A DNA stretch of 64,000 bases from Adineta vaga (taxonomy: Eukaryota; Animalia; Rotifera). Position numbers and translations under genes: made by a program. The notes beneath the pieces are model-generated. The model saw only the letters and a program-made list of their open reading frames with translations, did no database searches and was not told where the DNA came from. Positions 1,166-59,912 of the stretch are shown one piece after another (the stretch's first letter is position 1; each line of letters opens with the position of its first letter). The stretch is taken from the NCBI GenBank assembly GCA_021613535.1, contig CP075492.1:19282001-19346000 (forward strand), read 5' to 3'.

Positions 1166-1247
1166 ATCTAAGGTTGAGAGTGTGGTTGATGTGAGAGTAG
1201 CATATTTACACATTATTCTCACCTACCCACACCCACACCCTCAAGAT
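1166..1247. repeat. GT/CA hairpin element
   Basis: atctaaggttgagagtgtgg...cccacacccacaccctcaagat. Confidence 0.8.
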
Positions 1248-2069
1248 CTCGGCTGCTTTCCATACAAGAAAATCAAACAGCCAAGATTGAGGAATCTTCA
1301 AAAAACGAAGAGAGTCAAATTTGCAAATTGGGTGTTGAATAATTACACCAAAGATGATACAAAAATGTGGCTGTTTTCAGATGAAAAATATTTTGATTTA
1401 GATGGAATATATAACGTTCAGAACGATCGGGTGTGGGCTGTGAGCAGGAAAGAGGCTGATGAGAGAGGTGCTATACATGAAAAAACAAAATTTCCGGTGA
1501 AAGTAACGGTGTGGATGGGTGTGTGTGGAGAAGGACTGACGGTGCCTGTTATTTTTGAAGATGGGACAATGGATGCTCGAAGATACATTGATGAAGTTCT
1601 TCCAATAGCTTTAAAATGTGACAACAAAATATGTTAGGAAACAATTGGACGTATCTGCAAGATGGTGCTAAACCTCACACACATCATCTTAGTCAAGAAT
1701 GGTGTGCTGATCATTTTCCTGCATTTATCTCCAAGGATCATTGGCCTCCTGATTCACCTGATCTATGTCCATTTGATTATAGTTTATGGAATGAATTAGG
1801 TGAAGCTATAAACTGGGAACATGCAACAACAAAGGCAGCGTTAATAGAAGAGATAAAATGTTCTGTCAAAAGAGTTGATAAAAAAAAAGATTTTAAATTC
1901 TGTACTTGATTTTACTGAACGATTACGTTTAATAAAAAAAATGGAGGAAAGTATATTCGTTAAATAAAATATACTATCTTGTGCAGAATTTCAAGCTCCT
2001 ATTCTATCGGGTAATATACGAAAAATATTTAAAATACAGACAGTCTAATTTATTCTGGGACATCGGTTA
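1248..2069 (+). mobile_element. 5'-truncated, frameshifted Tc1/mariner-superfamily DD37D (maT-type) transposon
   Basis: WLFSDEKYF, YLQDGAKPH, WPPDSPDLCPFDYSLW; 37 residues counted between the 2nd and 3rd Asp; frameshifts near 1625 and 1885; possible right TIR near 2040-2069. Confidence 0.9.
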
Positions 2070-3778
2070 AGTCGGAACACATATGAAGAGAAGAAATACC
2101 GTGAGAAATTTTGATTGTATCCTTTTTCTTCATCACTTCGTTTTACTGAGTAACGAAAGAGAAGTTATATAGTATTTTTTTTCTGTAAATAGTATTATGT
2201 AAAAATTCACGATGATAATAAAAACAAATATACTAAAAGAAATGCATAAGTAATATGATAAGATAATATCTTTTCACATGTATTTTCAAATGATAAAGCA
2301 AAAATGAATTTATGTTAATTACTCATAGATTACGTCCATTTGCATAAGGACTTATATATTTAGATTTGATTTTTATACCAAAAATCTTTGGTAATATATA
2401 TGATATTTAAGAACATGGAAAACCACGTATTATTGACGAAAGACTTCTATGAATAACTGAATGATTTTGTCAAAAAAATAGATATGTTTGATGCAATATT
2501 TCTTCTTTGGTTAATTATTTCTGCTTTTTCTTTCTTTTTCTATTACTCTGTTATTACCACGATAAGTTAGAATCGAATGATTACAGTTATTTTACAAATT
2601 ATAACATAAAAAAATAGTGCTATTATTTTTTCTCAACCTCGAAAGAAATTTTGCCTCATATTTTCTTTTGCTTTAAAATATATTCTCTCGACTGTGTAAG
2701 GAGGGTTATCGGACAACAAATAATGTGTATGGAGGTGTGCTTCCGCCGGAGTCAAAGTTTAAAATTGAAAGAAACTTCACGAATAGGTTTCGGAGATCGA
2801 TGAAACTGACCAATCAGGTATAGTGCTACATAATAAAGCTGACAAATTGAATATCTAGGAGGCATGAATCAGCGAATCAGTCATTGATTATCTCAGATGG
2901 TTGTGTTTAGTTGTATGAGTCTACAAATGAGGATCAGTACGAGTGTCCTTCCATAACCTCTAGTAATAAATGAAAGACAGTTTGCAGTTGAAAGCTTTCT
3001 TTATAGATGATTTTGTTGCAGTAGATTAATTGTTAATTTATATTTATACATTTGACACATTATTTCCAGGTAATGATTTAGTATATTGATTATTAATAGA
3101 TAAAAAGATCAGATTTAAGTGGCCTGTAACGACCAAGTAATTAGCCGTTATAAGGTGCAACTTATGTAAAATTCAAGCAATTTTTTTTTCTTTTTTTTTC
3201 GTATGGTTATATTGAAAAAAATTGATTGTTCTCGGTAGTTTAGTGTCTTTGATTTTCATATAGAATGTAAGAGAATTCTCAATTGAGATCGATGTTCTCA
3301 TGACTGATTGATATATCTTTTAGTTCGGAAATATTTATCGTTAATTGTACTTTAATTGGATTTTTTTGAGTTCAGAATTCAAAATTCTTTTTCTTTTATT
3401 CAACAAAGATTCTCTGAAGACGAGATAATTGATTTAATTCAATTTCTTTTCTTTCGAATCACAACTGTCGAATTGAGAAAATGACTTCAAATTTTATTTT
3501 TGATTTTCGAATCGAAGAAAAAGATCATTTTTAATTTCTTTATTTCTTCTTCAAAACAAATTTTCATTTCAAAATCGATTGTTGATTTATTTTATAAGTA
3601 TTCGAAACTTTTTCTCGAAAAATTTATGATTTTACAAATCAATTTACAAATTACCCTCGTTTTTCAATCAAAATTGACTTTTTCATCGCATTTCAACGAT
3701 TTCAATTATTTTTCGTCATTTTCACAGAAAATCCTTTGAATTCCAATCAATGTTTTTCTTTTTCAAAATCTTTCAAAA

Positions 3779-4834
3779 CTAATTCCAGTTCAATTTGACA
3801 CAAATTGCTTTTTTATCAAATCGAACGATTCGATGATTTCCCCGATCTGAAACATAAAGATTTCCTTCTAAATCAAATGATAAACCATGAGGACAATTCA
3901 ATTGATTTGATTTACTTCCTTGACCATTTCCACCAACAACAATCTCACCTTCTTCATCTCCTTCATACCATCGCATTATTCGATGATTTCTACAATCTGC
4001 GACATAGATTTGATTCCATTCATCAACAAACAATCCATAAGGAAGATTCAATTGATTGAGATTGTTTCCTTCACCATTTCCTCCAGCCACAACAATTCCT
4101 TCATGCGCATGTTTTCTCCATTTCATCACACGATTATTCTCATAATCTGAAACATAAAGAGATTGATCTTTATCAACAAAGATGCACAGAGGATAGTTGA
4201 GTTGATTTGGTTGATTTCCTTTTCCATTTCCACCTGCAACTAATATTCCTTCTTTGTTTTCATTAATCTTTTCTAAATTCCATTTTCTCACTTCATTCTT
4301 TTCTTCATCACAAACATAAAGAAATCCATGTTGATCCATTGTTAAACCAGAACAATAAATATTTTGAATGAGAATATGTAGTTTTTGATCTCGTGACCAT
4401 CGCATCACTCGTGTGTTCCCCAAATCAGCAATAATGATTGAATGATTTTGTTGATCAACAATCACATCTGTTGGTCTATTCAATTGATCTATTCTATTTT
4501 CTTGTCCATTTTCACCTGTAATGATTTGTCCTTGTTTTTCATCACATTCCCATTTACCAATACGATGATTGTGATAATCAGCAATGAAAATGGTTTTGTT
4601 TTCATCAACAAAGATTCCTTGAGGACCATTGAGTTGATTTAATTGACTTCCTTTTCCATTTCCTCCCGCAACAATCTTTCCATTTTGTTGAAATGTCGAT
4701 TCTTCATTTAACATCTCATTATGTTCATTGAAATCTGTTTGACAAAATTCTTTTGAACAACCTTGGCATTGAATTATAATTTTTTTGTATTTCAGACATT
4801 TGAAACATTGTTTTGTGTTGTTTACCATGGCCAT
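3779..4834 (-). CDS. NHL-repeat beta-propeller protein with N-terminal B-box-like Zn finger
   Basis: CFKC...CQGCSKEFC...H, then repeated VAGGNGxG..NQLNxP.G.FVD....YV.D..NHRI. Confidence 0.9.
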   Translation of the reverse strand: MAMVNNTKQCFKCLKYKKIIIQCQGCSKEFCQTDFNEHNEMLNEESTFQQNGKIVAGGNGKGSQLNQLNGPQGIFVDENKTIFIADYHNHRIGKWECDEKQGQIITGENGQENRIDQLNRPTDVIVDQQNHSIIIADLGNTRVMRWSRDQKLHILIQNIYCSGLTMDQHGFLYVCDEEKNEVRKWNLEKINENKEGILVAGGNGKGNQPNQLNYPLCIFVDKDQSLYVSDYENNRVMKWRKHAHEGIVVAGGNGEGNNLNQLNLPYGLFVDEWNQIYVADCRNHRIMRWYEGDEEGEIVVGGNGQGSKSNQLNCPHGLSFDLEGNLYVSDRGNHRIVRFDKKAICVKLNWN

Positions 4835-5329
4835 TTGTTTGAATTGAAGTTGATAAAGGAATGAAATGTGTGTTGATGCATTTGTGTATTTAAAAAAAAA
4901 ACATGAGTCAAAATCAACAAAAATATTTCTATGTGGGAAAAATCATTGATTCCAACAGAATTCGTAACATGAAATGAAAAAAATCCAATAGAACGAAAAG
5001 AATTTTTTAATTTTTTGACAAATCAGTAAATGTTTGAAAACATTTGTATTTTTGAACAAACGAATAATTTCGTAAAAATATTGAGTAGATGTCGATAATG
5101 TTTAAATATTTGTCAAAGAGTACTTCGTTGTCGGAAGTGACGACATACGGTACACGAGGCACAATATCGTTGTCTTGTTGATCATTAACACTGAATGTAT
5201 AAAATGAAAAATAGTAAATCGATTACTTTCAATAAGTGCAAAGTTTATGCAGTCTATGTTTTTCAACATAAAGATTATTGAACGATACAGAAAATGTGTC
5301 ACTATGATAGAGTAAACGAATGAATAATA

Positions 5330-6050
5330 TTCTTAAATAACTCTTTGTTATCTGCAAGATATTACTCGATTAAATAATCAGAAAATCAGTTAAGTAAATA
5401 TTTTTTGATAATTATATGACGATGATAGCACACATCTTCTTATATTATATGAGAGAATAGCTGAACATGATTATATATAACTTAATTCTGTAACTAAAAG
5501 TCAAGAACATTTTAAACAAACACTTTGTTTTATTTTAGAATAAAATTCACTTAATGTATCATCTATTGATATGATTCATTTATGTTCAATCTCGAACGAT
5601 ATTATAATTATCGATTCATTAAAATCTCTTTCAATTAAAATTTATATGCTTAATTGTATAAAAGAAGTAAATATGGATGTTTTCATAGTACTTTTATATT
5701 CGACGATTACTCTCAATCACATCAAGTCTTTGTATTAGGAGTATATCCATCTGTTGCATTCATTAATCATTCATGTTCACCAAATATAGATCGTCTTTTC
5801 ATTAAGAATAATAATACTAGATTTCAAATAGGTGATTTAGTTTTTTTTGCAGCATATGGTGTGAAGTAAGATGAATATTTTTTTAATTGTCAATGAATAC
5901 GTTGCATTAATGAAACAAAAGGAGAAGTTGATAAATCTTTTATGAATCTAATAAAAGAACTTAAATGTCCAAAATCAAAATGTCAAGGTTGGTTTATTCT
6001 ATCTTTTAAAAAACATCATATGTGTTGTCAAGCATGTCAAATGTTACGAT
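5330..6050 (+). pseudogene. Degraded SET-domain (SMYD-like) gene fragment
   Basis: GVYPSVAFINHSCSPN motif at about 5740-5785, downstream Cys cluster, stops and frameshifts in the flanks. Confidence 0.6.
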
Positions 6051-6474
6051 AGACAATTCTTTTCTTTGTATCTCTACAATAATACTTTGAACAAGTAATA
6101 AATCTAACGTTTGATTAGAACATCATATTCTCAATAGCGATTATATTCAATAAAATTAAATAAGAATTCACAATCGAAAATGTTATTTAATGATTTATCA
6201 CGTATTTTGAGTAATATTTCATCAAAAGTCAATGCCATTTATAATATATGTATTTCGCTGTTTTGCACTCTTTTCTTTGTTCGTTATAATCTTTAAATTT
6301 GATATTTCAAATCGAATTGATTGATGGGAAAAATTGATAAGCTTCTTTTTCAATTAAACATGTTCTAATATAAAAAGCACAGTAGTTTAAAAAATATTAC
6401 ATTTTATTTTAATCATGAATAATCGTGTTTAAGTTCTATTATTCTCAATCTTCAATATTGTCTCACTGATAATG

Positions 6475-6554
6475 ATCTAGGGGTGAGGGTGTGGATGTGG
6501 GTGTGGGTATGAGTGTGAGAGAAGAGGAGATACCCACACCCACACCCTCAAGAT
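6475..6554. repeat. GT/CA hairpin element
   Basis: atctaggggtgagggtgtggatgtgggtgtgggtat...atacccacacccacaccctcaagat. Confidence 0.9.
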
Positions 6555-7753
6555 GGACGTAAAACTACCTAGTTTTACTGACATGATTAATTGTAGTTAT
6601 AAGATATTTATCGATTAAATCCTATTTATCTTTCTTCTTCTTTCTTGTATACATATCGTTAAAAATCATTCATATTTTACTGAAATAATAACAATATTAA
6701 CAACAAAAACAACAATGACATCAACATTGTAAAATATCGTCACCATTACCAACAAAATCAAGATCAAGATCAATATCAACATAATTAACATTAATAATTT
6801 CAACACCGTTTTTATATTTTATTATATCTGATTTCATTCACATCTATCAGAATTTCTGGAAATAATTTCACTTAACTAAATAAAGAAAATCACGAAGCAA
6901 TTCCTGATGATGTGTTCAGTTGAACACGAAAGCTCGAATAATCTCTTTTATTTCTGTTGAGATAAAACTTTTTCATCATGATCTTTGCAGCAGTCTTATC
7001 TTTATTTTCTAAATCATAATAATTTTTGCCCGAATATGATAATTAAAAAAAGAACATTTCTTTTAAAATCCAGAAGAAGTACCAGAAATGTTTGTAAATT
7101 AATTGATCTATATTTAAATTAGATTTTGTTCATATTTATGTAATTGTAATAGAATCATGTAATCATGATGTTCAATTTATATATTTCTTTTGAATATAAT
7201 AAATACTTAATAAATTAAAATTAGTATTAAATTAAGTGATATTATCCAAGATAAATATAAGTTAGTTTTCACTAAATAATTTCTTAGAAGTGTTTGGGTG
7301 CACATAGTCACTTCCTAAAAGATTTATGGAAAAAAACCTTATTGTGAACTTTTGTTTTTCTTTCTGATCTTATATGTCTTTGTAGACTATCTGAAAAAGA
7401 TGTAATTTGAGGCTTTTTAGAAAAAAAAAGTTTCTTCTTAATTCTTTATTTTATTTTATAGTAAAGGATAAAGCAACGAAAAATCTTTATCTTTATTTTA
7501 TAAAGAATAAAGATAATCTTTATCTTATAAAGTAAAGATAAAGTAACATCCCTAACATCCACCCGCCCACATTCTGGTTTAGATTTTAATCAAACAGTAA
7601 AACATATGGAGTCTTTATGATTAATTTTCATCGATAAATACAAGAATTTCTTGACATTAAAGTGAACTTCTCATTAAATTCTCTTCTATTTCCGTTAACT
7701 AATATAAAATATGTTATTTATTTAATTTGAATTTGAATGAAACAAATAATTTT

Positions 7754-8722
7754 TTATATTGGATTTCTATTGTTTATTGTTGTGTTTGGTCCTACCAGAT
7801 TGAATCGTACGTGTATTCTTTTCATTATAGATTCTCTAATTAGATCAGTAAAATAAAATAATGCAATCATAATTGATAAAATTGCACTATCAAAAAAGAT
7901 AAAAGCAAATCGATGAGCATATTCCATTTCTATATTGAATGCACCCATAAACCAAACTAATATATGAGAGAAACAAATGACAATTAGAATTGTAATTGTT
8001 ATAACTATTCGTCGAATCATTTTCAATTCACGTTGTGTTCGAATTTGATTATTAGAAGTTGTAACATTCTTACCAATGTGTTTTACATGTCTAACTAATC
8101 GAAAATATAAATACATAATTGATAAAACTGGAATGGAAAAGCCAACAATAATTGCATAAGCTACAAAGATAGAAAGTGCAACGGGTAAGTGACAGATTTG
8201 ATCATTAACATCATAAACAATGGCACCAGGATATAAAAATGGAGTAGGAACTAATAAACAAAATATCCAAAATAAACAAATAAGTAGAGTTTGAATACGA
8301 AATGACTGCCAAAACAATCGAGTTGGATACATAGCAAGAATATGTCTATATAGAGCTTCCAAAAAAAATGAATAATTAAAAGCCCAATACGAGCCATACG
8401 TCATATAAGCTCGAAAAACACAAAGTGAATCTTCATATTCAATCTGCTTAAGATCATTTTGAAGTGTAAATAAAACCATACCAAATCTCGCAGACGCACA
8501 AACACATGTCCATATACATGTATTAGCTACAAGCATCATGGGAATTGTATGACATGTTTTATCCAATATGATAACAAATATAAAAAGAATACTAAACATA
8601 ATAGTTGATACAGTGCATAAAATCATACAAACATTAATAAGTATAAACCATGATTGAATAGGTATTATTGTCATGTTATTAAAAAACAAATACGTTTGAT
8701 TAAATTCATCAGTTGAATTCAT
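7754..8722 (-). CDS. Class A (rhodopsin-like) 7TM GPCR
   Basis: Seven hydrophobic segments, TM3 Cys, EALYR at the DRY-like position, RELKMIRRI before TM6. Confidence 0.85.
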   Translation of the reverse strand: MNSTDEFNQTYLFFNNMTIIPIQSWFILINVCMILCTVSTIMFSILFIFVIILDKTCHTIPMMLVANTCIWTCVCASARFGMVLFTLQNDLKQIEYEDSLCVFRAYMTYGSYWAFNYSFFLEALYRHILAMYPTRLFWQSFRIQTLLICLFWIFCLLVPTPFLYPGAIVYDVNDQICHLPVALSIFVAYAIIVGFSIPVLSIMYLYFRLVRHVKHIGKNVTTSNNQIRTQRELKMIRRIVITITILIVICFSHILVWFMGAFNIEMEYAHRFAFIFFDSAILSIMIALFYFTDLIRESIMKRIHVRFNLVGPNTTINNRNPI

Positions 8723-10265
8723 TTATGAAATAAAAGTTAGTAAAATAAAGAAGAATACAGCTTTGAAATCATTATATATGAAGAAAAAAAACATTTTTAA
8801 TGAGCATCTGCTGACTTTTTCTCTTTTTTGTCAAAAACATTTTCTTCCTTTTCATGATGAACACATGTCAAGAAACAAAGAAGAAATATATCTTGAAGTA
8901 GCTGTCAAAATGAGGGATAATGAATTTTTCCTGAATAACTTCAAAAGAAAAACATTTTTTTGGGGTCACCCTACATGCTTTACGTGACTATTTAAATTCT
9001 ATTTCGAGTAACTATACATAAAGAAATCTTTTAGTTATTTATTTCTCCAGTAATAAAATATAGAACCAATAGAGATATAAATGAAAAATACATTTAATTT
9101 CTTTTATATTCACATATACCTTAAGGTTTATTATTTTAAAAAAAAGGATTAAAATGAGATACTCAGAATAGATTTTTTTTTGTTTATTTTAATTCTAGGA
9201 ATGTCATTAAAATTGAAATTACCAGTCGAATCTATTATGAATCGATATGATAATAATTCATCTTTAATGGACATCATTGTTAGTAAACCATATTGATAAA
9301 AAATCTTTCATTATATTATAATGCATATAAAAAGTTATATACGATTATGATTGTTTTATCTTACTGAAACTATCGTTTGCATCAGAAAATAAATTTTATA
9401 AGAATCAAATATTATTTTATTTGCTACCTGGTACAAGATTTTCCTAGAGTATTTTTATATAATCATCTCTACCTACACATCCATTTCATGTTATTCGACA
9501 AATATAACCCTTTGAGTCCCGATGGGATATAAACTTGTTTTTCAAATTGCTTTATAGTGTCGTAGATAGCATACGACGAGTAGTATACAACAGTATGGTT
9601 TGACTGGCATATGAAATATCGAAAAGGAAAAGTTAATAATAGCAGAAATGAACCTTTTAAGAAAGAAAAAAATTTTCCAAGTTTTTTTGCAAACAACTGT
9701 ACGTCGCCGGGACTCAAAGAGTGAAAAACTTTTGAGTTTCTATCCAATATTTCAAATCTTTTCGGAGTCACATTCGATTTTAAAAAAAAAAGTTTTCCTC
9801 AGCGGTAGATCCAGTTTTAGTGGTCCTCACACTATACACCCTTATGTTCACTTTCAACCTCAAATTTGAAATCTTCATCATTGATTATCTTCGATCAAAC
9901 ATTTAATGAAAATAGAATTCGCGAAAAAAAACACAATTTCTATAATGAAGTGTAGATTAGGTTCTCCTAAATACAACTGTTTCTACATATTGGATTCTAA
10001 TGAATTTGAGTAGACAAAAACATTTTAAACTCTTTTCATTCTTTATTTCATAAAAGGGAATAATAATAATATATTTTTTGGGTCAAAACGTAATAATGTT
10101 CCACTTACGAGCAACTTGCTATCTTTATCAGTATTCTTTATTCTCACTTAAAATAGCTAAGTATCATGCAGAAAAGATAAAATAGAATAAAAACAAAAAT
10201 AAAAAATCTTCTAACCATCGTTACAATATATAAATCATTTTATTTCAGAACAAAATTTCATCATA

Positions 10266-12685
10266 ATGCTGATGATTCAGACAACAATCTTCATTGCTAT
10301 TTTAACTCTATTATTTTCAACTACTTGTATGTCTGATCCATGTCGATTTGAATATCCTGGAAAAGGTATACTCGATATAACTACTTTGGGTCGAACAGAT
10401 GGAACAGCTGCATATGCCGATAGAATTCCACCAAGACAACCTGATTATAGTATGTTGATTCTATTTTTTGTTTACATATTTACTAGAGAATGATTTCTGA
10501 TTATAGAATATAGTTATAATCCATGCAAACCATTCTCTAAAGGATTTTATTGTACAAATGTAGCTGTTTGTCAAAGTGAGTATTGAAATAATTGTCATTC
10601 GTTTTTAGTTTTAGTTTTATTTTTATGATATTTATATAGTTTCAACCGATGGAAATTATCAATATGATCTCGGTAATCAAGGAACTGCATTATGGAATCC
10701 AAGTAGTGAGGTGGGTATTGCTGCAACAATTACTTATACACATAATGAGAGGACAGTTTTTGTTAAACTTCAATGTTCAACAACGGGAAAAGAAGAATTT
10801 GAAGTTCTTGGTGAAGATCCAAAGAATTATTATACTTTTCGTTTAACACATAAATGTGCCTGTTGGAATAGTTGTTCAAGTAAGTAAATATTGAAAAATA
10901 TAGTCGTTGGAATTATATTTTTTTTGTATAGGTCCAACTTCAACAACTACAACAACAACAATCGTGCCACCATCAATAAATCCATGCCGATTTAAATATC
11001 CAGGAAAAGGTATCATTGATCTTAGTTTTATTGGTCGAACAGATGAAAAAGCAGCATATTCAGATGAAACGACACGAACAGCATCGGATTTCAGTATAGT
11101 TATTTCGTTTTTTTTATCTTGAATTTTGTTACAGAACAATATGTTTATTGATTATAGAATATAGTTACAATCCATGTAGATCATTTTCTCAAGGAACTGA
11201 TTGTATTGGTGTGTCTGTTTGTCAAAGTTAGTAAATTGATGTTTTGTTTTGTTTATTCATCGTTATGTTTAGTTTCAAAAAATGAAAAACATACGTTTCC
11301 TCTTGGTACACAAGGAAGTGTTTCATGGAATGTAGGATCAGATTTAGATACTATTCCTTCAATTAATTATTCATATAAGAATAAGAAAGTCACTGTATTA
11401 TTGCAATGTTCCATTGAAGGAAATAATGAATTTCAAGCTTTTGGTGAAGATCCAAAAAACAATTACAAATTTCAATTGACACATAAATGTGCTTGTTGGA
11501 ATGGATGTTCAAGTAATGAAATGATAGAGAAATATCATATCATTTCATTTTTTTCTATCATAGGTGAACCTTCAACAACAACAACAGCAACAACAAGTCC
11601 AAGTATAACTACGACTCATAAGTCGGGTAAGTTTTAGAATCAATGAGGATGACAGTGTGGATAGGTTAGTGTAACAATTAATCATCGTCACATCCTTTCT
11701 TTTAGAATGGCATATTACTGGAAAGCTTAATGAGGCACGAACAGATTCTACGTTAACAATGTTGAACAATGGGAAAGTGCTAATTGCAGGTGGTGGCACT
11801 AGTCAATTTCTTCACAGTGCTGAATTGTATGATCCATCCACAGGTAATTGGACAATGACTGGTAAAATGTACGAAGAACGAGCCAGACATACAGCGTCCC
11901 TATTGCATGATGGAAAGGTATTAGTGGCTGGTGGAAACAATTTTAGACGTACTCTTATAGATAGTGCTGAATTATATGATCCATCTACAGGTAATTGGAT
12001 AACGACTGGTACTATGAACATAGCACGATTGTCACACGTTGCAACTGTATTATCAAATGGAAAAGTATTAGTTGAGGGTGGATATGGTCATGATCCTATT
12101 GATACTTTAGATAGTGCTGAATTGTATGATCCATTAACAGGTAGTTGGACACCTACTGGTAGTATGAATAAGGCACGTCTTGGACATACAGCATCCTTAT
12201 TACCTAATGGAAAAGTCTTAGTTGCTGGTGGCAATGAGGGCAAACATGAGGGCCCTCTAAATAGTGCTGAATTGTATGATCCATTAACAGGAAATTGGAC
12301 TTTTACTGGTAGTATGCAAAATGGTCAACAGTATAGCACGGCATCCACATTATTAAATGGAAAAGTGCTAGTTGCAGGATATAATGCTGAAATATATGAT
12401 TTCTCAACAGGAAATTGGTCATCTACTGGTAAAATGAATAGGCCACGAACAGATCATGCGGCATCTGTATTAATAGATGGAAAAGTTTTAATTGAAGGGG
12501 GAATTTGGTATAGTGAGGCTTTGAATAGTGCTGAATTGTATGATCCATCTACAAATACTTGGCAAGATACTATCAGTATGAAGATCGGACGACAGCAACA
12601 TGATGCTTGTACATTAACAGATGGAAGAGTTTTAGTTGTTAGTGGTAGAGAAGGACCAGACTCTGCTGAATTGTTTCTTCCATAG
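10266..12685 (+). CDS. Secreted protein: signal peptide, two MRH-like (mannose-6-phosphate receptor homology) domains, Thr linker, Kelch/galactose-oxidase-type repeats; multi-exon
   Basis: Two copies of CRFxYPGKG..YSYNPC..VCQ..HKCACWNxC split by short introns; phase-1 splice 11626/11706 joins in frame to repeats TGSMxxARxxHTAxLLxNGKVLVAGG..SAELYDP. Confidence 0.8.
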
Positions 12686-12825
12686 ATACTTTAGTTGTTG
12701 TTTCATGTTTGAAAAAGATCTTCTTAATCCTTTGATTCAGTAATCCATTCAGAGCTAATTTTAATAAATAATTGTTGTAATTTATCGAGGGTCAAACTCT
12801 GTTGTTATGATCGTGATCCATTTGC

Positions 12826-19827: not shown

Positions 19828-19831
19828 ACAA

Positions 19832-26920: not shown

Positions 26921-26921
26921 G

Positions 26922-47691: not shown

Positions 47692-48722
47692 TCATCCGAG
47701 AATCATTCGAATCAATAATTTGATTCTTTGGGCGAAGATTGAACGAAAATGTTTACTTGATAATGTGTAAATATAGAATGATTTAGCATAATTAGCGTAG
47801 AAGATAAGATTTATGATTGATTCAACGAGGATGCTCACGTGTTGATCATCATGGAGAGGTGCTGGTTTGAAAGAATAATACACATAAGGAATTAGATATG
47901 TAAAATTTAATGTTGAGGTTACTCCTACTTGAATAAGCATCATCTATAAGTATCGAAATATGACACAGAAAATTACTAAATTAACTACAAAAGAAATCTG
48001 ATTTAGATCGATCGATAACTTACTGCAATCAATTGCCTATCTGTTTTTTGCTTATTGCGTTGACGTTGATTTCCAGTGGCAGCAATCGTTTTTATCTGTC
48101 CCCTTATCAGCTTTTTTGATCGTCTAATATTCAAGAAAGTAAGAGAACCAAACACTAACATCAACAAATGTGGAATCACGCCTAGCCAAGACACCGCAAA
48201 TATACTATCAAATATTTCATAAGCACCAGGCATTTTGCGACATTTTGGTCGTACAACATACCCAACAACAACAGGTGTACATGAAATGATAGCGATGCCA
48301 ATCGCTACTATTGTCGCTCGATACGCCATCTTAATTTGACTAAATGTGCGTAAATGAACATGCATAGACGATGACATATATCGATCGATTGATGATAGTA
48401 GAACCAGGTAAATAGCAATCAAAGGAGTAGCATGAGCAACAAAGGAACGAATTTGACAAAATATCTGATTGGTGTTCCACAAAGTACTGCGAAAAAATTC
48501 GAACGAATATGCGGAAAGGAGTCCAAAAGTGATCGTGATGAACTCGAATAAAGTTGAAATGAGAAGGTAGAAGGCACATGAGTTACTCCTTAGTTGAGGC
48601 GCAGTAAATGTTATGAGATTACAGATGGAACTAATAGTACCGATGACTATGATAATCAAGGAGCCATAGTATCGAATTTCAGAAGTGAGGATTTGAGTGT
48701 GAGACAAAATCGTTGTGTTCAT
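47692..48722 (-). CDS. Class A 7TM GPCR, intron 47944-48023
   Basis: SNSCAFYLL, SSIDRY, DRQLIA/MMLIQV joined in frame, SFYIYTLSSKHFR. Confidence 0.88.
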
Positions 48723-49443
48723 TTTGTTGCGAGTACGGATTCTTTTCAAAAGTTTCTCACAATGACTAATATGACTAAACTGATGCTGTGGCAACGTTGT
48801 CAGATAAGTCTACGGTGATTATATTAATACTTCAATTCTGTATGTGACAGTTTATAGATCAGATTTCTCGCTACTTTCTTTTTCTCATTTGAAAAAATAT
48901 CTATTTGCACGAAGGAAATTATAATATCGTCATGGGTGTCACTAACACTACGTGTTTCTTCTATTAAACACGTTCAAATAGTCAATAAAGCTTCTGATGA
49001 TCATTGTTTTGATTAGTGGAGTGAGTATTAAAGAAGAATTTCGACAATAAAATGTATATTAGTCAAATAAATAATGAAGGAACAGGCATTAACATGGATG
49101 TCAATGATAAACTAATCATTTCGTGCATTTATAATTCATGCAGTCGATTTTTCAGACTATCAATTATTTTTACTTGCTTTTTGGACTGCGCGTGTAATGC
49201 TTCAATAAGAAGATATTTTTACCTTTTTGAACAATTAGAATTAGACGTAATTGTGGGGATTATAAAACGTGTGCAACAGCGACAATATGGGTGTGAGTGT
49301 AAGGTACGCGTATCTTATATTTAATCTCACTGTTTCAGCCATAATCTCGAAAATGAAAAACAAGAAAGCAAAGCATACATTTGTCTAGGTGTGTCTTGTT
49401 CTGATGTACTGTAAAAAAAAGCGCAGAATAAAATACCTTTTAA

Positions 49444-49641
49444 AGGTTTATGGAAGTGCAACGTATAACAAACCCTTTTCTCCCGTTTATGATATTTGCA
49501 TAAACTGTGGAATAAACGCTTTGCAAAAGAAATATGGAAACGTTTATGAAAATCAAAAAACCTTAATAAAGGGTTTATTACAGCGTTTATATTATCATTA
49601 AACCCTTAAAGGGATTGTTATACGTTGCACTTTCAAAAACC
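49444..49641. repeat. MITE-like inverted repeat
   Basis: aggtttatggaagtgcaacgtataacaaacccttt versus aaagggattgttatacgttgcactttcaaaaacc. Confidence 0.6.
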
Positions 49642-50181
49642 CACTAGAACCGTTTATGAATCACAATAGACCATATAGTAAAGTCTGCAAACAATCCGAT
49701 TTGAAGGGTATTTGACGAACATATACCCGATTATTTCGATTAAAAAAAACATTTATGACAGGTTTTATCATTATCATCAACTCCACAAAGGATTGATAAA
49801 ACCGTATATTATCAAGTATATTAACCATAAACATAAGGCATCAGGTAGATGAAATCGTAGAATAATGGGTATATTCAGATGAGAAGTATCTTTGAGGGTA
49901 GATGAATTTTTAGAAGAATGGATAGGTTCTTCCGAATAATACTGTGTCTAGAACTCGAATCAATCGCAGCACGGGACCGACCTCGTATTGTATCAACAAG
50001 GAGGAAAAAATAGTATTATGTGAGGTGCTCAATAAAGATGAGGAACTGTTATAAGACCTAAGAATGCTACTATCAGTGAATGATAAAACGTATTGAATAC
50101 CATGTTGTTTAGGAAGAAGAAATTCACAAAGATCGTGACGATGTATAATGAAAGACGTAGACCTCAATAGGAAAACGAGAT

Positions 50182-50245
50182 CCATCTTGAGGGTGTGGAT
50201 CTTACTGTATCTTCAGTCATACGCTCACCCACACGCTCAAGATGG
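50182..50245. repeat. GT/CA hairpin element (closest to consensus ends)
   Basis: ccatcttgagggtgtgg...ccacacgctcaagatgg, 16 of 17 terminal bases pair. Confidence 0.92.
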
Positions 50246-51361
50246 TATAGCTTTTTGTACACGAAAGGCGATATTTTAAAAATATCTATGTTGTTAAATA
50301 ATATGTCAAAAGAGACGAAATCGGATGCGGTAGAGATCTGAAAGCATGCTGATCATTGTTTTGTACATTCGCATATTCGGTTGGTATTTCTATTTCTATA
50401 AGAAATAAAAAAATTTGTCAATTGTCACAAAAGCTAACAACGGGTGTCAATATGTTTTGTATATCTGTTTACGTAAAACAGAACAAAATGAATAAGTGCC
50501 CATCGATTTAGCCACTGCATACCTTTTCATACTTTCTTTTTAGCGTAATACACAAAGACACATTAGTCTTTCTTTAAGGCTGAAGTCAAAGAGCATAATT
50601 AAAATAACATTTCTATTCAAGATATTTCTATATGCTGATAGCAGTTTAGTCAAGACAAATATGATCAAATGTTGATTTATATCAATCAGTAGGATTTAGT
50701 ATGTACATTAATGCTATTATTCTTGATTGTTGGTTTTAAAATTGACAATGAGGTAAAACAGTATAGATTGAATCAATGAAAAGAAGAATAGTTTCCTGAG
50801 CAAAGAACTGGATTTGTATCGTTTGAATGAATTTCAATGAAATATCAAAGTTAATTTCTTCGTCTAGATCTTGAATGCTCATCAGAAAGCATTTCATTTC
50901 TTCATATACCATTGAAATTATCTTTCAAAATGATTCATAAAAGTAATATATACGAATTGCAAAACAAAAGAAGATAAGTTTCCTTCATTAATGATTATAT
51001 TTTTTTGCCGTTATAATTCTTTTATTCTTTCTTTCTTTTTGCATAAAAACGATACGATATGTGATACAATAAAATAAAAAATAAAATGTAGTTCGATTAC
51101 AAATATTCTATGCAATTTGTCTTCTCCAAAAAAAAAAGATTGCGAGTGGATGATTATAAAATATGAATAATTAGTCAAATTTCACTCGCACAGTGAACAT
51201 ACAACTTGGAAATCTTCAAAGTACATGTACTCATTTATTTGATGTTGGATTTTTCTTTTACCTTTCTTATCGTCAAGTCAGACGAATGACGTGTTGATAC
51301 AACATCACTTAAATAAGTCATCAATAAACACACGCAGTCTTCAGTTTCATTTCTCAACGAA

Positions 51362-51601
51362 ATGCGTGTCTTTGTGAAAAACCTCGACGACAACGTCTGT
51401 ACCATTGAGATCGAACAATCGGACAGTGTGAGAAGTGTTAAGAGAAAGATTGAAGAAAAGACAGGAATATCACCTTGGTTTCAGAAATTAATTCTTCAAG
51501 GTCAGCAACTTGATGAAGATAAACCAGTCAGTGACTATAATATGCAAGAAGGAAGTACAATCATCATCATTCATCGTGGTTCGTTGGAGCGTCCTTCTTA
51601 A
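51362..51601 (+). CDS. Single ubiquitin-like domain protein without C-terminal di-Gly
   Basis: MRVFVKNL..IEIEQSDSV..VKRKIEEKTGI..QKLI..GQQL..SDYN.QEGSTI; ends HRGSLERPS. Confidence 0.85.
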   Translation: MRVFVKNLDDNVCTIEIEQSDSVRSVKRKIEEKTGISPWFQKLILQGQQLDEDKPVSDYNMQEGSTIIIIHRGSLERPS

Positions 51602-51805
51602 TTGACAAAAAACTAAATCAAAAATCATTTTATATGCTTATTTTTTGAAAACTACTATTGTGTATATCCAAAAGTAATATCGGATGTACTTTATTTCCTT
51701 ATTATATGATACAAAATAAATTCCTTTCTTTACAGAATGCTATAGAAAATGAAGCTCTATTTTTCTATACTATTTGATCAATATTGAACTACTATCAAAA
51801 TTTTT

Positions 51806-51884
51806 ATGAGGGTGTGGGTGGGTGTGGGTGAGGGTGGGTGGGTGTTTATCATTAACTCACGCACCCACCCACACCCACCCTCAT
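51806..51884. repeat. GT/CA hairpin element
   Basis: atgagggtgtgggtgggtgtgggtgagggtgggtgggtgt...gcacccacccacacccaccctcat. Confidence 0.92.
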
Positions 51885-53260
51885 CAGAAACAAAAATTTG
51901 TCACATATCAATCTCTTCTTAACAATCAGTTAGTATATTTTGGTGGTAATTATGCTTATGAATACTCATTTATTAAATGGTTGTCCAATTCAATTTCGTA
52001 TCTGCATAGTGGATTCGAAAACTTCAGCAAATGCTACAATGATACTAAGAAATGGACGATAGATAATCATGACGACAATGATGGAAAGTTGTCTCCGACA
52101 CGTATCCAAGACTTCTGGTTTCTTTATAACTTTATTACTATTTCATTTTTTTATACAAATATAAAAATATTGCAAATTCCTTCCTGTTGGTGAGCATAAT
52201 ATTCTTTCATTGTATTTACGATTCATGGGAATTTCTTACAATATTTTCACAGTGATCGGCAAGAGCTAGTTCAACTGATGAATCAGCAATTTGAACCATT
52301 GAACATGCAGTTTGCAAATTTTTGGGCGTCTCATGCTCAGCATCATGCCTGTAATTCTCTATGCTCAAAAGTCTTTGTAACGGATGGCTTTCAGAAACCA
52401 AGTCGTTTCATATGTGGTAATGTCGAAATGACTGTCCACAATGAAGAACTTGGTAAGCAGTAGGAGGTTTCCAATCCTATTCAATTATATACTAACTTTT
52501 TATTAATCAAGGGGTTATTCAAGTTGGATACGGCAATCGCCCTGACTACGGAACAAAACGGAAAAACATGGAAGATTGTGGAGATGAATGTTCGAGCAGT
52601 TCAGTAGAGGGTGAGAGTCATGAGACAGAAATTTCAATATGTAAAACATGCAAGGCAAATCCAGCTGTCCACAAAGTAGAAAAAGAGCTGATAATAAATA
52701 CCGAATGTAATATAAATCGCAATCCACGATTTGTCAATGGAAAAGTCAGATCATACGGTCTTATTTATACAATGTACAACTGTGGAATTGTGGTCGATTG
52801 CTTAGAAATTAATTTATCGGAACAAGTATATATTACCTTGCTCCATTGGATAAACATGTTGAAAAAATTTGAAGATTTAACCAAAATACCATCCGTTTTC
52901 GTGTATGATAATGCTTGTAGAGTTTGGATGGATGTTAAAAATCGTCTTCACCAAACAAAAACAATTGTACCAACTCCAACGGCTCTGTTTCTCGATTCTT
53001 GTGATATGTATATCGATCGTTTACACCAGAGGACACACACTCGATCAATGTGTCGATTAGAGCGAAATATCAACTTACGTTCAGATTTGAAAAACATCCA
53101 CCCAATTATTTGTGAACAAACGAACTCATGGCTGAGACAGTATATAAACATGCTATGTAATTTCTCTAGAGAGCGATCGAAATTTTACTACTTATTTTTA
53201 TTTCATCTTTTGAATTGTAGACGCTGTAGTTTTGATCCGGAAAAAAATCCATTATTTTAA
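51885..53260 (+). mobile_element. 5'-truncated KDZ (Kyakuja-Dileera-Zisupton)-type transposase gene with two introns
   Basis: VFVTDGFQK, FVYDNAC, IDRLHQRTH..C, ICEQTNSWL; introns near 52190-52252 and 52453-52511 keep the frame. Confidence 0.75.
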
Positions 53261-53749
53261 AATAAACTTACGTTCTTGTTTTATCAATATCGACCAGCAT
53301 TTTGATGAGCTCAGCTATGTTGGAGACATGTATTAAATAATTAAAAGGACTAAAGGGACTAAAACGCTTTACATGTCAGATCTAAAGTTACACAAAGATA
53401 AAATTTATTTTTCGTGGACCCCTCATATGAAATAATTAAAGTATAAACTGCCGAATCGTTATGTGCAAAACAATAATAAGCAGACGTAAATATAACATGT
53501 CTCGCCTGAATATGATTTTAATGTTGTTAGGAAAAACTCAGTCTCGTCACAATGAATCATTCTCATCCTAAGATATAAAATGTTCAACGATGAAGAAAAC
53601 ATCCATGGTATTTTTCTAATAATGCTTCGAGCAATTGAAGTTTTATTTTCTCTTTAAAAACTGTATATAGATTAGTTTGCTTCAGACAAGTATATCTCAT
53701 GTCAATTTATTTTTCGTTTGAACCATATCATCACCCTCGGACTTCTGAA

Positions 53750-55000
53750 CTATGTAGCCCATGGCGAATTATGGTCATGAACATGGGTTGTTAATTGATT
53801 CTTCATTAAATCACGAAGATCCTCTTTTGTGACTGGTTTATTCATCACGTTCATAACAGCCATAGCTGTTTGTTTTGAATTAGGATACCGCCTATCATGA
53901 CGTAATCGATAAACGTACCAGTGACTATCTCTGTAATAACATGAAACAATTTTGTTATCATATTTTTGCAAATACGACGAGTAACGCATCGTCGCAAACG
54001 GCCTATCCATACGACTGAGAACGAGATGAACTTTCTTCTCCTGATGTGTACCATTGTCGACAATGTTCAAACGAAAATCGATCGTCTCGTTTTCCTTCCA
54101 CTTCAATACGTCTGGACATTCACCAGTTCTGTACGGCTTTCGTTCTGGTAAAAAAAAGAGTCCTTCAACTTCATGAGGTATGCTTGCACGAAATTCCCGG
54201 CTAAGCAGTTTGTCCATGTCTGGTAAGCGAAAAAACTGTTTGATTCGTATGCGAAACGGCTGCGTTCCCTTTGTAATGGCATTATTGTGTATGTTGACGA
54301 TCGATTCAGAAATGAGCTTCAAACGGTCCTGAAATGGATGAGCGGTCACGTCTGTACCATTATAAATGATGATATCGTTGATAAAAAAGCTAGCCTTGTT
54401 CGAACCATTGATTTTATCACTTACAACTTCACCATCGACTAATGTGTCCTTTAGATGAGTTGTATTGGCCGCATCGTATGGAAATCGAATCTCATCAACG
54501 CTGAATAGATCATTACCTTGGTTGAGCATGTACACTTTATTTTCTTCTTCAATTAACATCATGTACCGTTTACCAACCGGTTTCCAAGTGACCACATAGG
54601 GCAATTGCAAAATGTTGGCATAATTTTCACGATGCATTGGTACAGGCTCAGATCCCGGAAATCGTTGGCAAGACCACAGACATAACTCCCGATATTTTTG
54701 TTGGAGTTTTTCCCGCAATGGTTTGTAACGGACGGGTCTCACCTCAGGCAAGGGAAGAAAAAATTCTGGTGCGGTTGACCGTTGTGGTGCTTTACGAAAT
54801 CGTTTATCTGGTCGGTTAGAAGCATGATGCTGGTAACAACGTTTGTTACCTTCACTTGTGGTAGATCGATCATCCGATTCCACTTGATAGTCACTATTTG
54901 TCGGGTACTGTTGAGGCAATGTTGGCTTCAAAATAGATAAGAAAAAACAAAGATGTATTATTATGAGCTGCCGTTCGGTTAGGCCATAGAGTGATCTCAT
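53750..55000 (-). CDS. mRNA capping guanylyltransferase-like protein (NTase + OB domains), divergent; 5' exon structure uncertain
   Basis: FPGSEPV, YVVTWKPVG (motif I), TLVDGE (III), INDII (IIIa), EGLFF (IV), VLKWK..TIDF (V), RLRHDR..PN (VI). Confidence 0.85.
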   Translation of the reverse strand: MRSLYGLTERQLIIIHLCFFLSILKPTLPQQYPTNSDYQVESDDRSTTSEGNKRCYQHHASNRPDKRFRKAPQRSTAPEFFLPLPEVRPVRYKPLREKLQQKYRELCLWSCQRFPGSEPVPMHRENYANILQLPYVVTWKPVGKRYMMLIEEENKVYMLNQGNDLFSVDEIRFPYDAANTTHLKDTLVDGEVVSDKINGSNKASFFINDIIIYNGTDVTAHPFQDRLKLISESIVNIHNNAITKGTQPFRIRIKQFFRLPDMDKLLSREFRASIPHEVEGLFFLPERKPYRTGECPDVLKWKENETIDFRLNIVDNGTHQEKKVHLVLSRMDRPFATMRYSSYLQKYDNKIVSCYYRDSHWYVYRLRHDRRYPNSKQTAMAVMNVMNKPVTKEDLRDLMKNQLTTHVHDHNSPWAT

Positions 55001-55336
55001 CTGTAGACTTTCCTTTTTCTTTCCACCTCCATCTTTTCTTTACCATCCCTCCATGAGACCATAGTCGTCATTATTCTCACTCACTCTCTCTCTCAGTCAT
55101 TTGCTACAGCTTTCAGCAAATGATAGTTGTCCTTTTAACAATTGTCTTCATTCTCTTTTATTTCCACTTGATAGTGGGACATAAAGTTCTTAAACCATCA
55201 CATATAGAACCGATCGAAGTAATTTAACACTTTCGCAATATGGAATTGATTACGTAGTTCTCTATTCTGCCATCAATTTTCGATGTGTTCTCAAGTCCGT
55301 TGAAGTTCTTTCTGGTAGCTTATTTACGTAAGAAAT

Positions 55337-56341
55337 CTAGAATTCTGTCAATCTACTTACCGAGCCTTGTTCGGATCGATGAGGTTTCATCGCACTACTG
55401 CTGCTACCTTCAACCGATCGCGTACATTTCAGTTTCGTAATCGCACCATCTATAATCGTCAAAAGCTTCAACTCTGTTAAAATTTCGATTTGCTTTTCAG
55501 CCTCTTCGTCTCTCTCGTCTCTGATACGTTCTTCAGTTTGTTGTATTTTTTTCGGTAATTTTTTTACGTCATCAAATTTCAAATTGGCCATTCCATTGAT
55601 CAGCTCTTCTTCGACGTAGGAAAGATTCATCACAATACTGCTCTCTTCAACTGATCGGGTGGATTTCAGTTCCGTAATTGTTTCATCTAAAAGCGTCAAA
55701 CGCTTCAACTCTGTCAAAATCTCCATTTGCTTTTCAGCCTCTTCCGCTCCGTCGTCTCCGATACGTTCTTGAGTTTGTTGTATCTTTTCTGGTAACTTAT
55801 TCGTACCATCGATCAGGAACTTCGTCAATCCATCGTTTAACACCTTTTCGAGTTGATAAAGTTTCTCCACACTAGTACTGTCTTCATCCGCTTGACGACA
55901 TTTCAGTTTCGTAACTGTGCCATCTAAGAGCACTAAAGCTTTTAGCTGTGTCAGCATCTGCATTTCCTCTCTGTTCATTATTCGAGAGTGTTCGATACGT
56001 TCTTGAGTTTGTTGAGTTTTTTCTGATAATTTATCCATGCCATCAACCTTTAACTTTGCCATTTGGGTGACCAACTCCTGTTCAAGTACAGAAATAATAG
56101 ATTTGTCTTGAATTGGCGAGTTGGAAGCGATAGATTTCAGTGTAACATCATCATGAATGGGAAAATCTTGAAGTTCAGACTGTCGAGAATGTACATCTTC
56201 GTCGTCCGTCCTATTAGGTGATTGATCAAATGTTTGTTCTGCTTTATTCCGCATACGATATGCTTCTGCCATGATCTTGCAACCGTATTGATGCAGGAGA
56301 AGTTGAGTATTTTTTGTTTCACAAAGGTCTGAATTATCCAC
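55337..56341 (-). CDS. Helical protein with three tandem 78-79 aa repeats (likely an internal exon)
   Basis: KLxxKxQQTxERI recurs at 234 and 237 nt spacing (55994, 55760, 55523); non-ATG ORF start; donor gtaagt near 55360. Confidence 0.65.
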   Translation of the reverse strand: MDNSDLCETKNTQLLLHQYGCKIMAEAYRMRNKAEQTFDQSPNRTDDEDVHSRQSELQDFPIHDDVTLKSIASNSPIQDKSIISVLEQELVTQMAKLKVDGMDKLSEKTQQTQERIEHSRIMNREEMQMLTQLKALVLLDGTVTKLKCRQADEDSTSVEKLYQLEKVLNDGLTKFLIDGTNKLPEKIQQTQERIGDDGAEEAEKQMEILTELKRLTLLDETITELKSTRSVEESSIVMNLSYVEEELINGMANLKFDDVKKLPKKIQQTEERIRDERDEEAEKQIEILTELKLLTIIDGAITKLKCTRSVEGSSSSAMKPHRSEQGSVSRLTEF

Positions 56342-56641
56342 GTTTCAGGATCGAACACTATAATACAAAATGTAAGTGTAAGTTAGAAGAGTTACTAACG
56401 TGCTTTTTGTTCGATCACTGTTTCATGAAGCATTTTGAAGAAAATGTAACTCGATCTCATTATTGAAACCCCGTACATGTCTCATTCACAGTCAGAGAAA
56501 AAGCTAAAAGGAACGCATAAAAAAGCGTAGAAATTTTATAACAAAAATAAAATTGTAAAAAACGCACATTTTTTACATGCTAACGACGCGTTAACGTCTC
56601 TTATTGCGTTTCTTCGTTGTTGGGATATTCCATGCGCCGTC

Positions 56642-56707
56642 GTGGGTGTGGGTAATACTCTTATTTTCACCCTCAAGATCCATACCCACACCCACACCCT
56701 TAAAATC
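56642..56707. repeat. GT/CA hairpin element with doubled right arm
   Basis: gtgggtgtgggtaatactc..caccctcaagatccatacccacacccacacccttaaaatc. Confidence 0.85.
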
Positions 56708-57010
56708 GAACCGTTGAATTCGATGATTGAAACAATCAGCAATATAAAGATTTCCTTCGAAATCAAATGATAAACCACAAAGAAAAGACAATTGATTCAA
56801 TTCATTTTCTTCACCATTTTCACTTAGAAGAATTTCTCCTTTTCTTTCATATTTGATTTCCATCTTATAATACGATGATTTCCTCAATCAGCAATGAAAA
56901 TATATTTACTTTGATCAATAAATATTCTATAAGGATCAGAGAGTTGATTGAATTTATCTTCTCTTCTATTACCTTCCGCAACAGTTTTTCCTTCTATTGT
57001 TTCCATTTAT
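56703..57010 (-). pseudogene. Degraded NHL-repeat gene fragment
   Basis: GLSFDFEGNLYIADCFNHRIQRFD, similar to the end of 3779-4834; frameshifts upstream. Confidence 0.75.
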
Positions 57011-57696
57011 TGAATTTGATATCTAAACAAAAAAAACGACGCAACATATTAAATTGAATTTTTGTTTGAAATTATCTAACAAACATAAATCTTATTTCGA
57101 TTTTCATTGATTTTCTTTCTACAAACTGAAAATTCTAATCGTATTTTATTTTTCATAAAAATTGTTGATCATAATTATTAAATTTTTTTCGAAACAAATC
57201 AAATTTGATTAATTCAATAAAAGAAAAAGAATAAAACTTACTTGATAATACAAATGAAGCAGAATTCGATGTTGAAATTGTTAATTTATCGAGTACAAGT
57301 AATGAATTCGTTAAAGGAGAGACAAATATTTCATACGGTGCTTCTGTTGTTCTCTTAAATAAATGATAAATAAATCTTTAGTCACTTTTCATTTATTAAT
57401 AATTTAAAAATAAGTTCGAGGAAGAAGAAGAATTTGATTTTCATTTTGAAAATATGAATAAGAACGAATTGATTTTCTATTTAAACATTCAATATTAAAT
57501 ATTTGTTCGATCATCATTAGTTCGAATAAATCTTTCCATAACATTCATTTTATCAGTATATGAACTTAATTTCCCACGAAAAATAATCATCATTTAAATT
57601 TCCATGAATATTACCTATGTGAGTTTAAAAAAAAGAAAAGATGAAATTAAAATTTCAATAAAGATATCTTTTCTTTTTTTTAGAAAATTATTAATC

Positions 57697-58732
57697 TCAT
57701 TTAGAGTTCATAAATAAGAAATGAGAAGTGTTATTTTTTTTTTGACATAAAGATTTGTTACATGATGAACGAAAAGAATGACATATATCTGTTGTAGTAT
57801 TTTCTTTTGGTGGTAACATAAAAGTTGGATGAAGACCAAGAATAATATGCCAAAGAAATTCTAAACTTCCACCAAACCATTTTTTTCCTAATTTACCAGG
57901 TATTTCTTGATCTAATGGTGATGTACAATATGGTTGAAGACTTGCATTATAAATTGATGACCATTGTTCATATGTATAATGTAAAATACGTTCTTTTCGT
58001 ACATAAAATTGTGCACAACATCTTGTTGAAATAAGACTTTGTTCTTTTGGTTGAATATTATATGGATTTAATTGAGAATCACCATCATAACCAAATAAAC
58101 TTAAGATATATTTTGCACAATTATACATTAATGTATTATTATTAATTGGATCACGAACTTCCGATAACCATATATGATCTTGAACCCAAAAAGAATTAAT
58201 ACTTGTATAAAAAACATCATCACGAATACATTGTGCTACTTCAATTGGAGCATATGAATGTTTAAATGGATTTGCATGAATAAATAACATTTTATCAGGT
58301 AAATCATGATAAAAATCATAAATAAATTTTAAATAAACACCTGCTTCTTCATGAACATTTTTACAATATGACCAATTATATGGTGAATTGGAATTGGGAT
58401 CCAATCGTTGATATAAATAAATATCATATGATCTATTTCGATTATTAGGAATGAAATCAAGTCCATAACGTAACCAGAGTGGCCATTGTGTAGAATTAAA
58501 CCAATCAATTTCTTTATATATGGCTGGAATAATTACAAGACGATCTTTTTTCCATCGACTTATTTTTTCATTTGAATTTGTAATTAATGAAATTCTTTGT
58601 GATTTATAAAGATTTAATATAAATAATATTCCAATAAAATTTAAAAATAAAGAAATATTTCTAAAAACATTCAATTGATTGATACTATTTTTTAATCTTG
58701 ATTTTGAGAAAAACTTACTTAATTCGATTCAT
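57697..58732 (-). CDS. DUF3431-like type II membrane protein
   Basis: HEEAGVYLKFIYDFYHDLP..FIHA, CCAQFYV..ERI, LEFLWHIILG; the listed ORF starts at TTG, and an ATG at 58732 joins in frame via a very short GT-AG intron (uncertain). Confidence 0.75.
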
Positions 58733-59564
58733 TCAAATAGAAACTCAATTAAATGGGGATTTTTCTTTCCAAAAAGAAATGCAAAATTCCATTTAAACTT
58801 TCTCTTTTAAAATATGTATTATTGAATGAAAAGAAAAAACTGTAAAACATTATTTTTCTTTCTCATTCTGTCTTTTTAATGTCAACTTCATAGTCTAGAA
58901 CATTCGATTCCATTTGTAATGAAAATTAAAGTGAATTTTGTAAGGATGAGTTGATCAGCGAGAAGACGTCATATGTCTATGTCAAATGAAAGCTATTATC
59001 ATCCAACTAGCAAGCTTAAAATATTAGTTGTTCATGGCATCTCTAGAGGGAGATATTCGATTTATACAGTACTCAAAATTTATGTATAAAATTTTTCCCT
59101 TTTCAGAAAGAAAGGGTTATAGGCTCTTAAAATCGTTAAAGTTTGTTTGTCTAATCCAATCAGATTGCAGCATTTCATAAATCGATGAAAACTTAACAAT
59201 GGTCATCAGAAAATAAATCACCTAAAGGTTTTTAAGGTCGAGAATTACGAATCCGATACTAGGGCAGCATTTTCAAATATAGATTGTAACGACGAAAAAG
59301 AGCAGATAGATGGTGTATCACATCAATCTACCAGAGAAACATTTTTATATAATGTACTAACGTAGAATGAGATTTGTCAAGTAATCTTTGTCTTTCATCT
59401 CATCCTAATTTGTTCGTAATAGAAGATATCGATGATCATGTCATATGAATTTATTTTTCAAAAAAAAACTAAGGTTAAAAAAATTGCTTGCGGGAGTATT
59501 TAACGAATGAATAATGAAAAGAATATGAATTAGAACAAACAAAAAAAAAGATGCTGAAAACTGT

Positions 59565-59872
59565 TTAGTTGATAAATAGTTTGATGATTATCAATCCAAC
59601 CAAGAAAGAAACGAATGTCAAATTGATGGTAGCAGTAGCTCTAATCGATGTGGTGGGTTTAGGTTCATTTCGTATAGCAACTTCGCTACATTCAGAAGAT
59701 GTTACATTATTAAGTTGAATCGTACGACTATCTTGACTAAGTGTAATATCAATTGAATCTCCCAAAAATAATAGTATGCTACTGAAATCACTAGGAATAG
59801 GAATAGTTTCATTGAGCAAAAATGTTGTACCAGGACATGTAAATTGACTTTGAACATGCAATGTATTCGTAT
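59565..59872 (-). pseudogene. Isolated C-terminal exon of a probably GPI/TM-anchored protein
   Basis: Two Cys, S/T-rich linker and hydrophobic C-terminus; the frame begins at a hairpin element. Confidence 0.4.
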
Positions 59873-59912
59873 TTAGGGTGTGCGTGTACTATCTTATCCC
59901 ACACCCACCCAC
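59871..59912. repeat. GT/CA hairpin element (short)
   Basis: atttagggtgtgcgtgtactatcttatcccacacccacccac. Confidence 0.7.

Follow-up and report, generated by a model that had tools for sequence, protein, structure and literature searches.

How does DNA come to be joined where the genes of a subtelomere break off? In a 64,000-nucleotide stretch of Adineta vaga chromosome 3, ~1 Mb from the chromosome end (G000:C3:19282001-19346000; hereafter the window), a preliminary description made from the letters alone had placed short hairpins at six gene truncations, and had proposed that they mark rearrangement junctions and that the region is a patchwork joined at them. We compared the window with its inverted paralogue P (C3:19.98-20.06 Mb; 60 kb, in blocks 93-99% identical) and with twelve donor loci, so that the sequence tests rest on ~310 kb, and genome-wide counts cover 100.8 Mb in six contigs. 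Contigs specific to the window and to P each reach ~55-65% of the depth found over the stretch they share, which suggests that each version is single-copy; P may be an unpurged second allele in the assembly, or both copies may be hemizygous, and the comparison stands in either case. The direction of change is certain only for genes having intact relatives.

Short telomeric tracts at internal sites

The telomere repeat of A. vaga is TGTGGG (PMC7943196, PMC8494291), and short telomeric stretches are already known from bdelloid subtelomeres (PMC2861651). The hairpins are short head-to-head tracts of this repeat at internal sites, with a median length of 54 nt, each made of a G-arm (TGAGGG, then mostly TGTGGG), a spacer and a reverse-complement C-arm. 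By weight matrix the window contains 53 arms (1175..62739), against ~3 by chance, at a density of ~1 per 1.2 kb; about two thirds are paired head-to-head and about one third are solo, with anything from 1 to six or more repeats per arm. It is the telomeric arm rather than the hairpin that forms the relevant unit; the preliminary description had not recognised the arms as telomere repeats. A reversed-sequence control was unusable for single arms because the repeat, reversed, reads as itself.

Paired arms follow one order almost without exception, G-then-C in 65 pairs against 2 C-then-G in the 310 kb, and in 66 against 1 genome-wide. The first repeat is distinct as well: runs of five TGTGGG in the genome are preceded by TGAGGG 12 times and by three non-G bases never. 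Outside the arms lies a variable-length match to CCATCT, of at least 4 bases in 20 of 61 unselected arms (control word, 0), and the 18-mer formed by CCATCT, TGAGGG and TGTGGG has 111 genomic copies, on both strands and mostly <3.5 Mb from chromosome ends; exact copies outside the subtelomeres lie at C1:9065601, C4:9674845, C5:9282545, C5:11754559 and C3:13455078. The same arm structure occurs in three contigs of one metagenome sample, unrelated to the ~310 kb analysed. The spacers (10-40 nt) are purine-rich and strand-asymmetric, and identical ones occur with unrelated flanks on different chromosomes. An Rfam search of the elements gave nothing at the gathering score, weak miRNA-type hairpin matches only, and the viral contigs searched had no match to them.

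The features compared are as follows, in window coordinates; a strand is given where the feature has one.
1175..1247: head-to-head tract; the C-arm edge (1243) and a following AGAT adjoin a DD37D (maT) transposase, of which the 3' part is present; P has the same left flank, spacer and arm, but the right flank is swapped
1242..2069, plus strand: maT transposase, 5'-truncated, with its 3' inverted repeat; frameshift near 1630; D-D spacing of 37 counted in translation
6478..6556: hairpin with full AGATGG end; ~55-58 nt of P absent at the C-arm edge; donor supplies CCAT
16190..16249: hairpin; ~95 nt deletion relative to C3:18.38 Mb, ending at the G-arm edge
16460..16510: degenerate hairpin; homology to P begins at its C-arm edge (16507)
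18684..18736: hairpin; P has the spacer but not the TGAGGG start; a loss of 26 nt at the left and a swapped flank at the right
19836..19887: hairpin; right-flank homology to C3:4.15 Mb starts inside the C-arm
25912..25929, minus strand: solo C-arm linking two unrelated segments
26926..26984: hairpin; left donor (copy ending 45654) gives CAT; right edge adjoins an ART-TPR family gene that is truncated; the spacer recurs on C1 between unrelated flanks
33984..33996, plus strand: one-repeat solo G-arm; on one side the cut S33 gene (minus strand), on the other an unrelated fragment from 33996; donor gives CCA
37017..37101: hairpin; spacer and right flank common to C5:0.638 Mb, left flank not
47455..47513: hairpin; ~260 nt of P missing on its left; on its right ~130 nt of the window have no counterpart in P
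50182..50245: the most complete of the hairpins; both arms carry the whole CCATCT extension; fold z -5.9
51807..51885: hairpin adjoining 5'-truncated KDZ/CxC5 coding sequence
56641..56702: hairpin with nested second start; homology of the left flank to C3:17.297 Mb stops at 56639; right flank formed by an NHL gene's end
59873..59913: hairpin cutting an anchored-protein exon (minus strand)

Several other structures were noted in the region. P 8665-8832 is a fold-back palindrome, of which the window (1085) retains one arm. A divergent pair of coiled-coil GTPase genes (20243-24179; AIG1/GIMAP-like by motif) sits in a large imperfect palindrome whose centre, near 22200, has no telomeric arm. At 36650-37175, adjoining the 37017 hairpin, lie a 44 nt inverted repeat and a piece of a repeated element, and at 45785-45949 a 165 nt repeat with >20 copies at ~80% identity ends at the 45946 G-arm. 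An mRNA capping enzyme (Pfam PF01331, PF03919) is encoded at 53750-55000, in a segment whose other copy lies at C3:17.30 Mb; this segment adjoins a gene with 237 nt repeats (55337-56341) and is possibly element- or virus-derived.

The junctions

Compared with P, donors, genomic relatives and homologues, the joins at all six sites are real, and each lies at a tract's outer edge. At the maT site the hairpin and left flank are common to P up to 1247, beyond which the window has the 3' part of the DD37D transposase. (Where the window has this 3' part, P 13073-13345, C3 near 20046800, has the 5' end of a maT-family transposase, cut without an arm.) At the ART-TPR site, with this piece alone as query, homology with ~95 genomic relatives sets in at residue 3 (nt 26983), within frames that mostly span 300-1300 aa, against 108 aa in the window; one relative (L028 near 5160, C5:1.818 Mb) also loses homology right after a TGAGGG. 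Homologues of the KDZ/CxC5 sequence that carry the CxC5 domain align to the arm edge and run on N-terminally, and the donor of the anchored-protein exon runs on through 59875, where the window switches (59875/6). Pfam named neither the exon piece nor four of the junction fragments, and their identities rest on paralogues and homologues.

Two sites modify the earlier picture of hairpins at gene truncations. The join at 56703 takes from the NHL gene only a tail that follows the last repeat and is not conserved; the large loss, which is N-terminal, lies at the gene's other side (~57020), where no arm was found. The S33 site (33984) is a lone arm that has no partner and does not fold (z 0.37). The S33 gene is intact in P, which fixes the direction of the cut; the window copy is cut between 33986 and 33987, ending after CCA, and is followed by TCT, one TGAGGG and an unrelated fragment, and the missing part of the gene is nowhere in the window. 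This join and the next 3.3 kb are without differences in contigs of three studies (2013, 2015, 2021), a support that is word-level rather than long-read, with 30 nt left of the join, one short of the bridging threshold; beside the contig with the join, a second contig continues as in P. A spliced contig covers 34688-36534, its source being a probable RNA run, and no RNA contig was found for the cut S33 piece.

These contigs from three studies speak against an assembly chimera. Such chimeras, or sister-chromatid telomere fusions (breakage-fusion-bridge), are an extremely improbable source of the joins: head-to-head order is the signature of fusion ITS and the chromosome arm containing the window carries inverted duplications, but no hairpin has palindromic flanks.

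Breaks at arm edges

Ends of alignments within the ~310 kb were tested against random placement by counting those within 6 nt of an arm's outer edge. The enrichment is strong. At identities of at least 88%, 8 of 38 alignment ends lie at arm edges where 0.61 are expected (p<1e-4), and at 70% identity 18 of 176 where 3.6 are expected; by eye, ~3 further recent breaks lie at degenerate arms missed by the matrix, giving ~11 of 38. Between about a fifth and a quarter of recent breaks thus lie at arms, and most breaks lie elsewhere. That the elements mark rearrangement junctions holds, whereas a patchwork joined at the hairpins overstates the case.

The elements are also not simple insertions, as had been argued: no empty site was found among the hairpins with homologous flanks, a small sample, and the nearest approach to one is a deletion of 16-260 nt ending at an arm. 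At L002 1334-1554, a ~160 nt tandem duplication that includes a hairpin ends at the hairpin edge.

A MITE- or HUH-type DNA transposon, non-autonomous and with ends that provoke neighbouring deletions as well as one-ended transposition, would account for inverted arms, dispersed copies and spacer families on several chromosomes. Against it, the ends are not fixed, neither target duplication nor empty site was found, many arms are solo, and the interior is not homogeneous, with 42 spacer families among 58 elements. We regard this reading as largely refuted and give it very little probability.

Template register and proposed telomere seeding

What happens at an arm edge is clearest at the three full-extension joins with a close donor, where the switch falls inside CCATCT: the host supplies CCAT (6550), CCA (33990) or CAT (26926), and the remainder is new. 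At other joins the register of the switch varies from -1 to +8, for an overall range of -4 to +8. Over all 25 donor cases the in-register match is 2.44 against 2.00 by chance (p 0.046), a weak excess, so that the priming step rests mainly on the three clean cases. The microhomology suspected earlier is shown only where donors exist, as 3-4 in-register bases; the in-frame reading of terminal bases, offered in its support, proves little.

Two further observations concern arms already in place. Start bases missing from P's arm are present in the window at 6550 and 18684, next to an unchanged spacer, which suggests that a new tail annealed into an old arm. At 1175, 18684, 37017 and 16190 one flank is swapped, and these swaps, together with identical spacers between unrelated flanks, fit repeated swapping.

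A switch inside CCATCT is what a 3' end priming on an RNA template would give, a mode of priming established for telomerase. From the arm-edge joins, the new template-like bases, the repeat order and the one-sided swaps, all directly seen, we infer an RNA template, an enzyme, an annealing step and an origin for the spacers, and consider it probable that the arms are scars left where telomeres were seeded de novo and then served to rejoin DNA. Broken ends would be acted on by a reverse transcriptase that adds repeats from a single fixed RNA template; it would be telomerase if the animal has one. The predicted template RNA, 5' to 3', is ACCCACACCCUCAAGAUGG. It would pair with 1-5 bases of the broken 3' end, after which the remainder of CCATCT and TGAGGG would be copied once and TGTGGG added a few times; TGAGGG first and TGTGGG after would fit an alignment region that is copied in the first round and not again. 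Host bases in register are also known from vertebrate ITS (PMC7215372). The tail may then anneal into an existing arm nearby, giving a local deletion, or into one elsewhere, giving a flank swap; joined to any weakly matching end it would leave a solo arm, and fused with a second seeded end a hairpin, our simplest guess for the head-to-head pairs. Repeated swaps would bring old spacers to new flanks.

We count it against this proposal that seeding alone leaves the spacer origin and the head-to-head excess unexplained and that most breakpoints have no arm. Two other origins were tried and rejected: spacers are not copied from their own flanks in excess (16.6 vs 15.9), and symmetry of the arms, as from fold-back synthesis of one on the other, is not in excess (p 0.57).

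A passive history, in which old, fragile hairpins break and rejoin by microhomology or template switching and CCATCT is inherited with no new synthesis, would account for the stable folds, for several deletions that stop at an arm lying 16-260 nt off in the same molecule, and for indel events, which number 13 per kb in arms and 2 outside. On this account edges should erode, yet full ends stand where the paralogous arm has none (6550, 18684); the S33 site has a perfect start but no hairpin, and the TGAGGG-first order is left unexplained. We hold this account to be quite unlikely.

Telomerase or Athena reverse transcriptase

The enzyme behind the seeding proposed here is less clear. Bdelloid TERT sequences were reportedly described in 2007, which we do not count as evidence, and no rotifer telomerase RNA was found in the literature searched. 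One survey did not find TERT in A. vaga (PMC5405514), a point in favour of the Athena/terminon reverse transcriptase, which could make arms from its own RNA tail; the spacer would then be the linker between hammerhead and tail, and the hairpins aborted attachments joined to a second end. Terminon RNAs end in a hammerhead followed by ACACCC/TCACCC (PMC6431247), and five genomic arms have an upstream hammerhead core, of which two clear and two probable hammerheads by eye end in the same CCCTCAAG; short, strand-asymmetric spacers that fall into families agree with such an origin too. The shared CCCTCAAG is ambiguous, because the same picture would result if a terminon had attached to a tail made by the host. 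One and the same arm terminates three hammerhead-linker types that are unrelated to each other, as expected on attaching to a shared host-made tail, and one end common to unrelated linkers favours a common host template. Comparison of three terminon linkers with the spacers gave no match above the shuffled background, no hammerhead lies 5' of any C-arm in the 310 kb, and repeat numbers up to six or more fit repeat addition. We think an Athena origin unlikely. It implies terminon transcripts that carry CUCAAGAUGG, rather than ending at ACACCC without CUCAAGAUGG. With ~19 nt of template RNA predicted, the dispute over how bdelloid telomeres are made can be put to a direct test.

Implications

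Joins seeded by telomeric repeats would explain part of the patchwork of this region and offer a sequence-level mechanism for bdelloid subtelomere mosaics, rich in broken genes and foreign DNA. More tentatively, seeding and annealing may together be a routine form of end-joining in bdelloid subtelomeres that makes any two ends compatible, even foreign ones, and drives gene shuffling and capture, possibly through a domesticated Athena reverse transcriptase in a TERT-less animal. The link to desiccation raised in the preliminary description is plausible in view of the neotelomeres found at deletion breakpoints in A. vaga lines (PMC13564844), and the arms provide a countable marker after desiccation or irradiation.

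Comparison with known systems

No description of this joint structure was found in the literature surveyed; it may have been described before in the 2007 or 2017 Arkhipova papers. The neotelomeres of A. vaga are likewise telomeric repeats added at internal breaks, in the same species, but are described as transient end caps rather than fragment joints, with no template signature reported in the portion of that account available (PMC13564844). With the bdelloid Athena/terminon retroelements (PMC6431247, PMC8557442) the arms share the telomeric motif, the subtelomeric site and the CCCTCAAG end beside hammerheads, whereas the hairpins are without RT, pLTR or hammerhead and the terminon caps described are head-to-tail. 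Fusion ITS, relics of telomere-telomere fusion, have the same G-strand then C-strand order, but not the 1-6 repeats per arm, the non-telomeric spacer or the many copies per chromosome arm seen here.

Vertebrate short ITS and TERC-ITS type C (PMC7215372, PMC8537989) are likewise short telomeric tracts at break sites, with flanking deletions and host bases in register (1-6 there; here in 3 of 3 full-extension joins with close donors, and weakly over 25), and in the Xenopus-type TERC-ITS, as in the arrangement predicted here, head-to-head repeats come after the sequence lying directly 3' of the template (PMC8537989). In vertebrates such tracts are rare (142 ITS in horse; 3 of 41 TERC-ITS head-to-head), and their orthologous sites are empty, whereas here there is ~1 arm per 1.2 kb, mostly head-to-head, with no empty site found in a small sample; unlike vertebrate ITS, the arms also join unrelated segments, are reused, which spreads their spacers, and have a distinct first repeat. 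Because the empty-site feature fails and density, head-to-head excess and reuse differ, we do not file the arms as members of the short ITS/TERC-ITS group. By analogy, the closest known mode is the insertion of short ITS by telomerase, nearest to the Xenopus-type TERC-ITS (PMC8537989).
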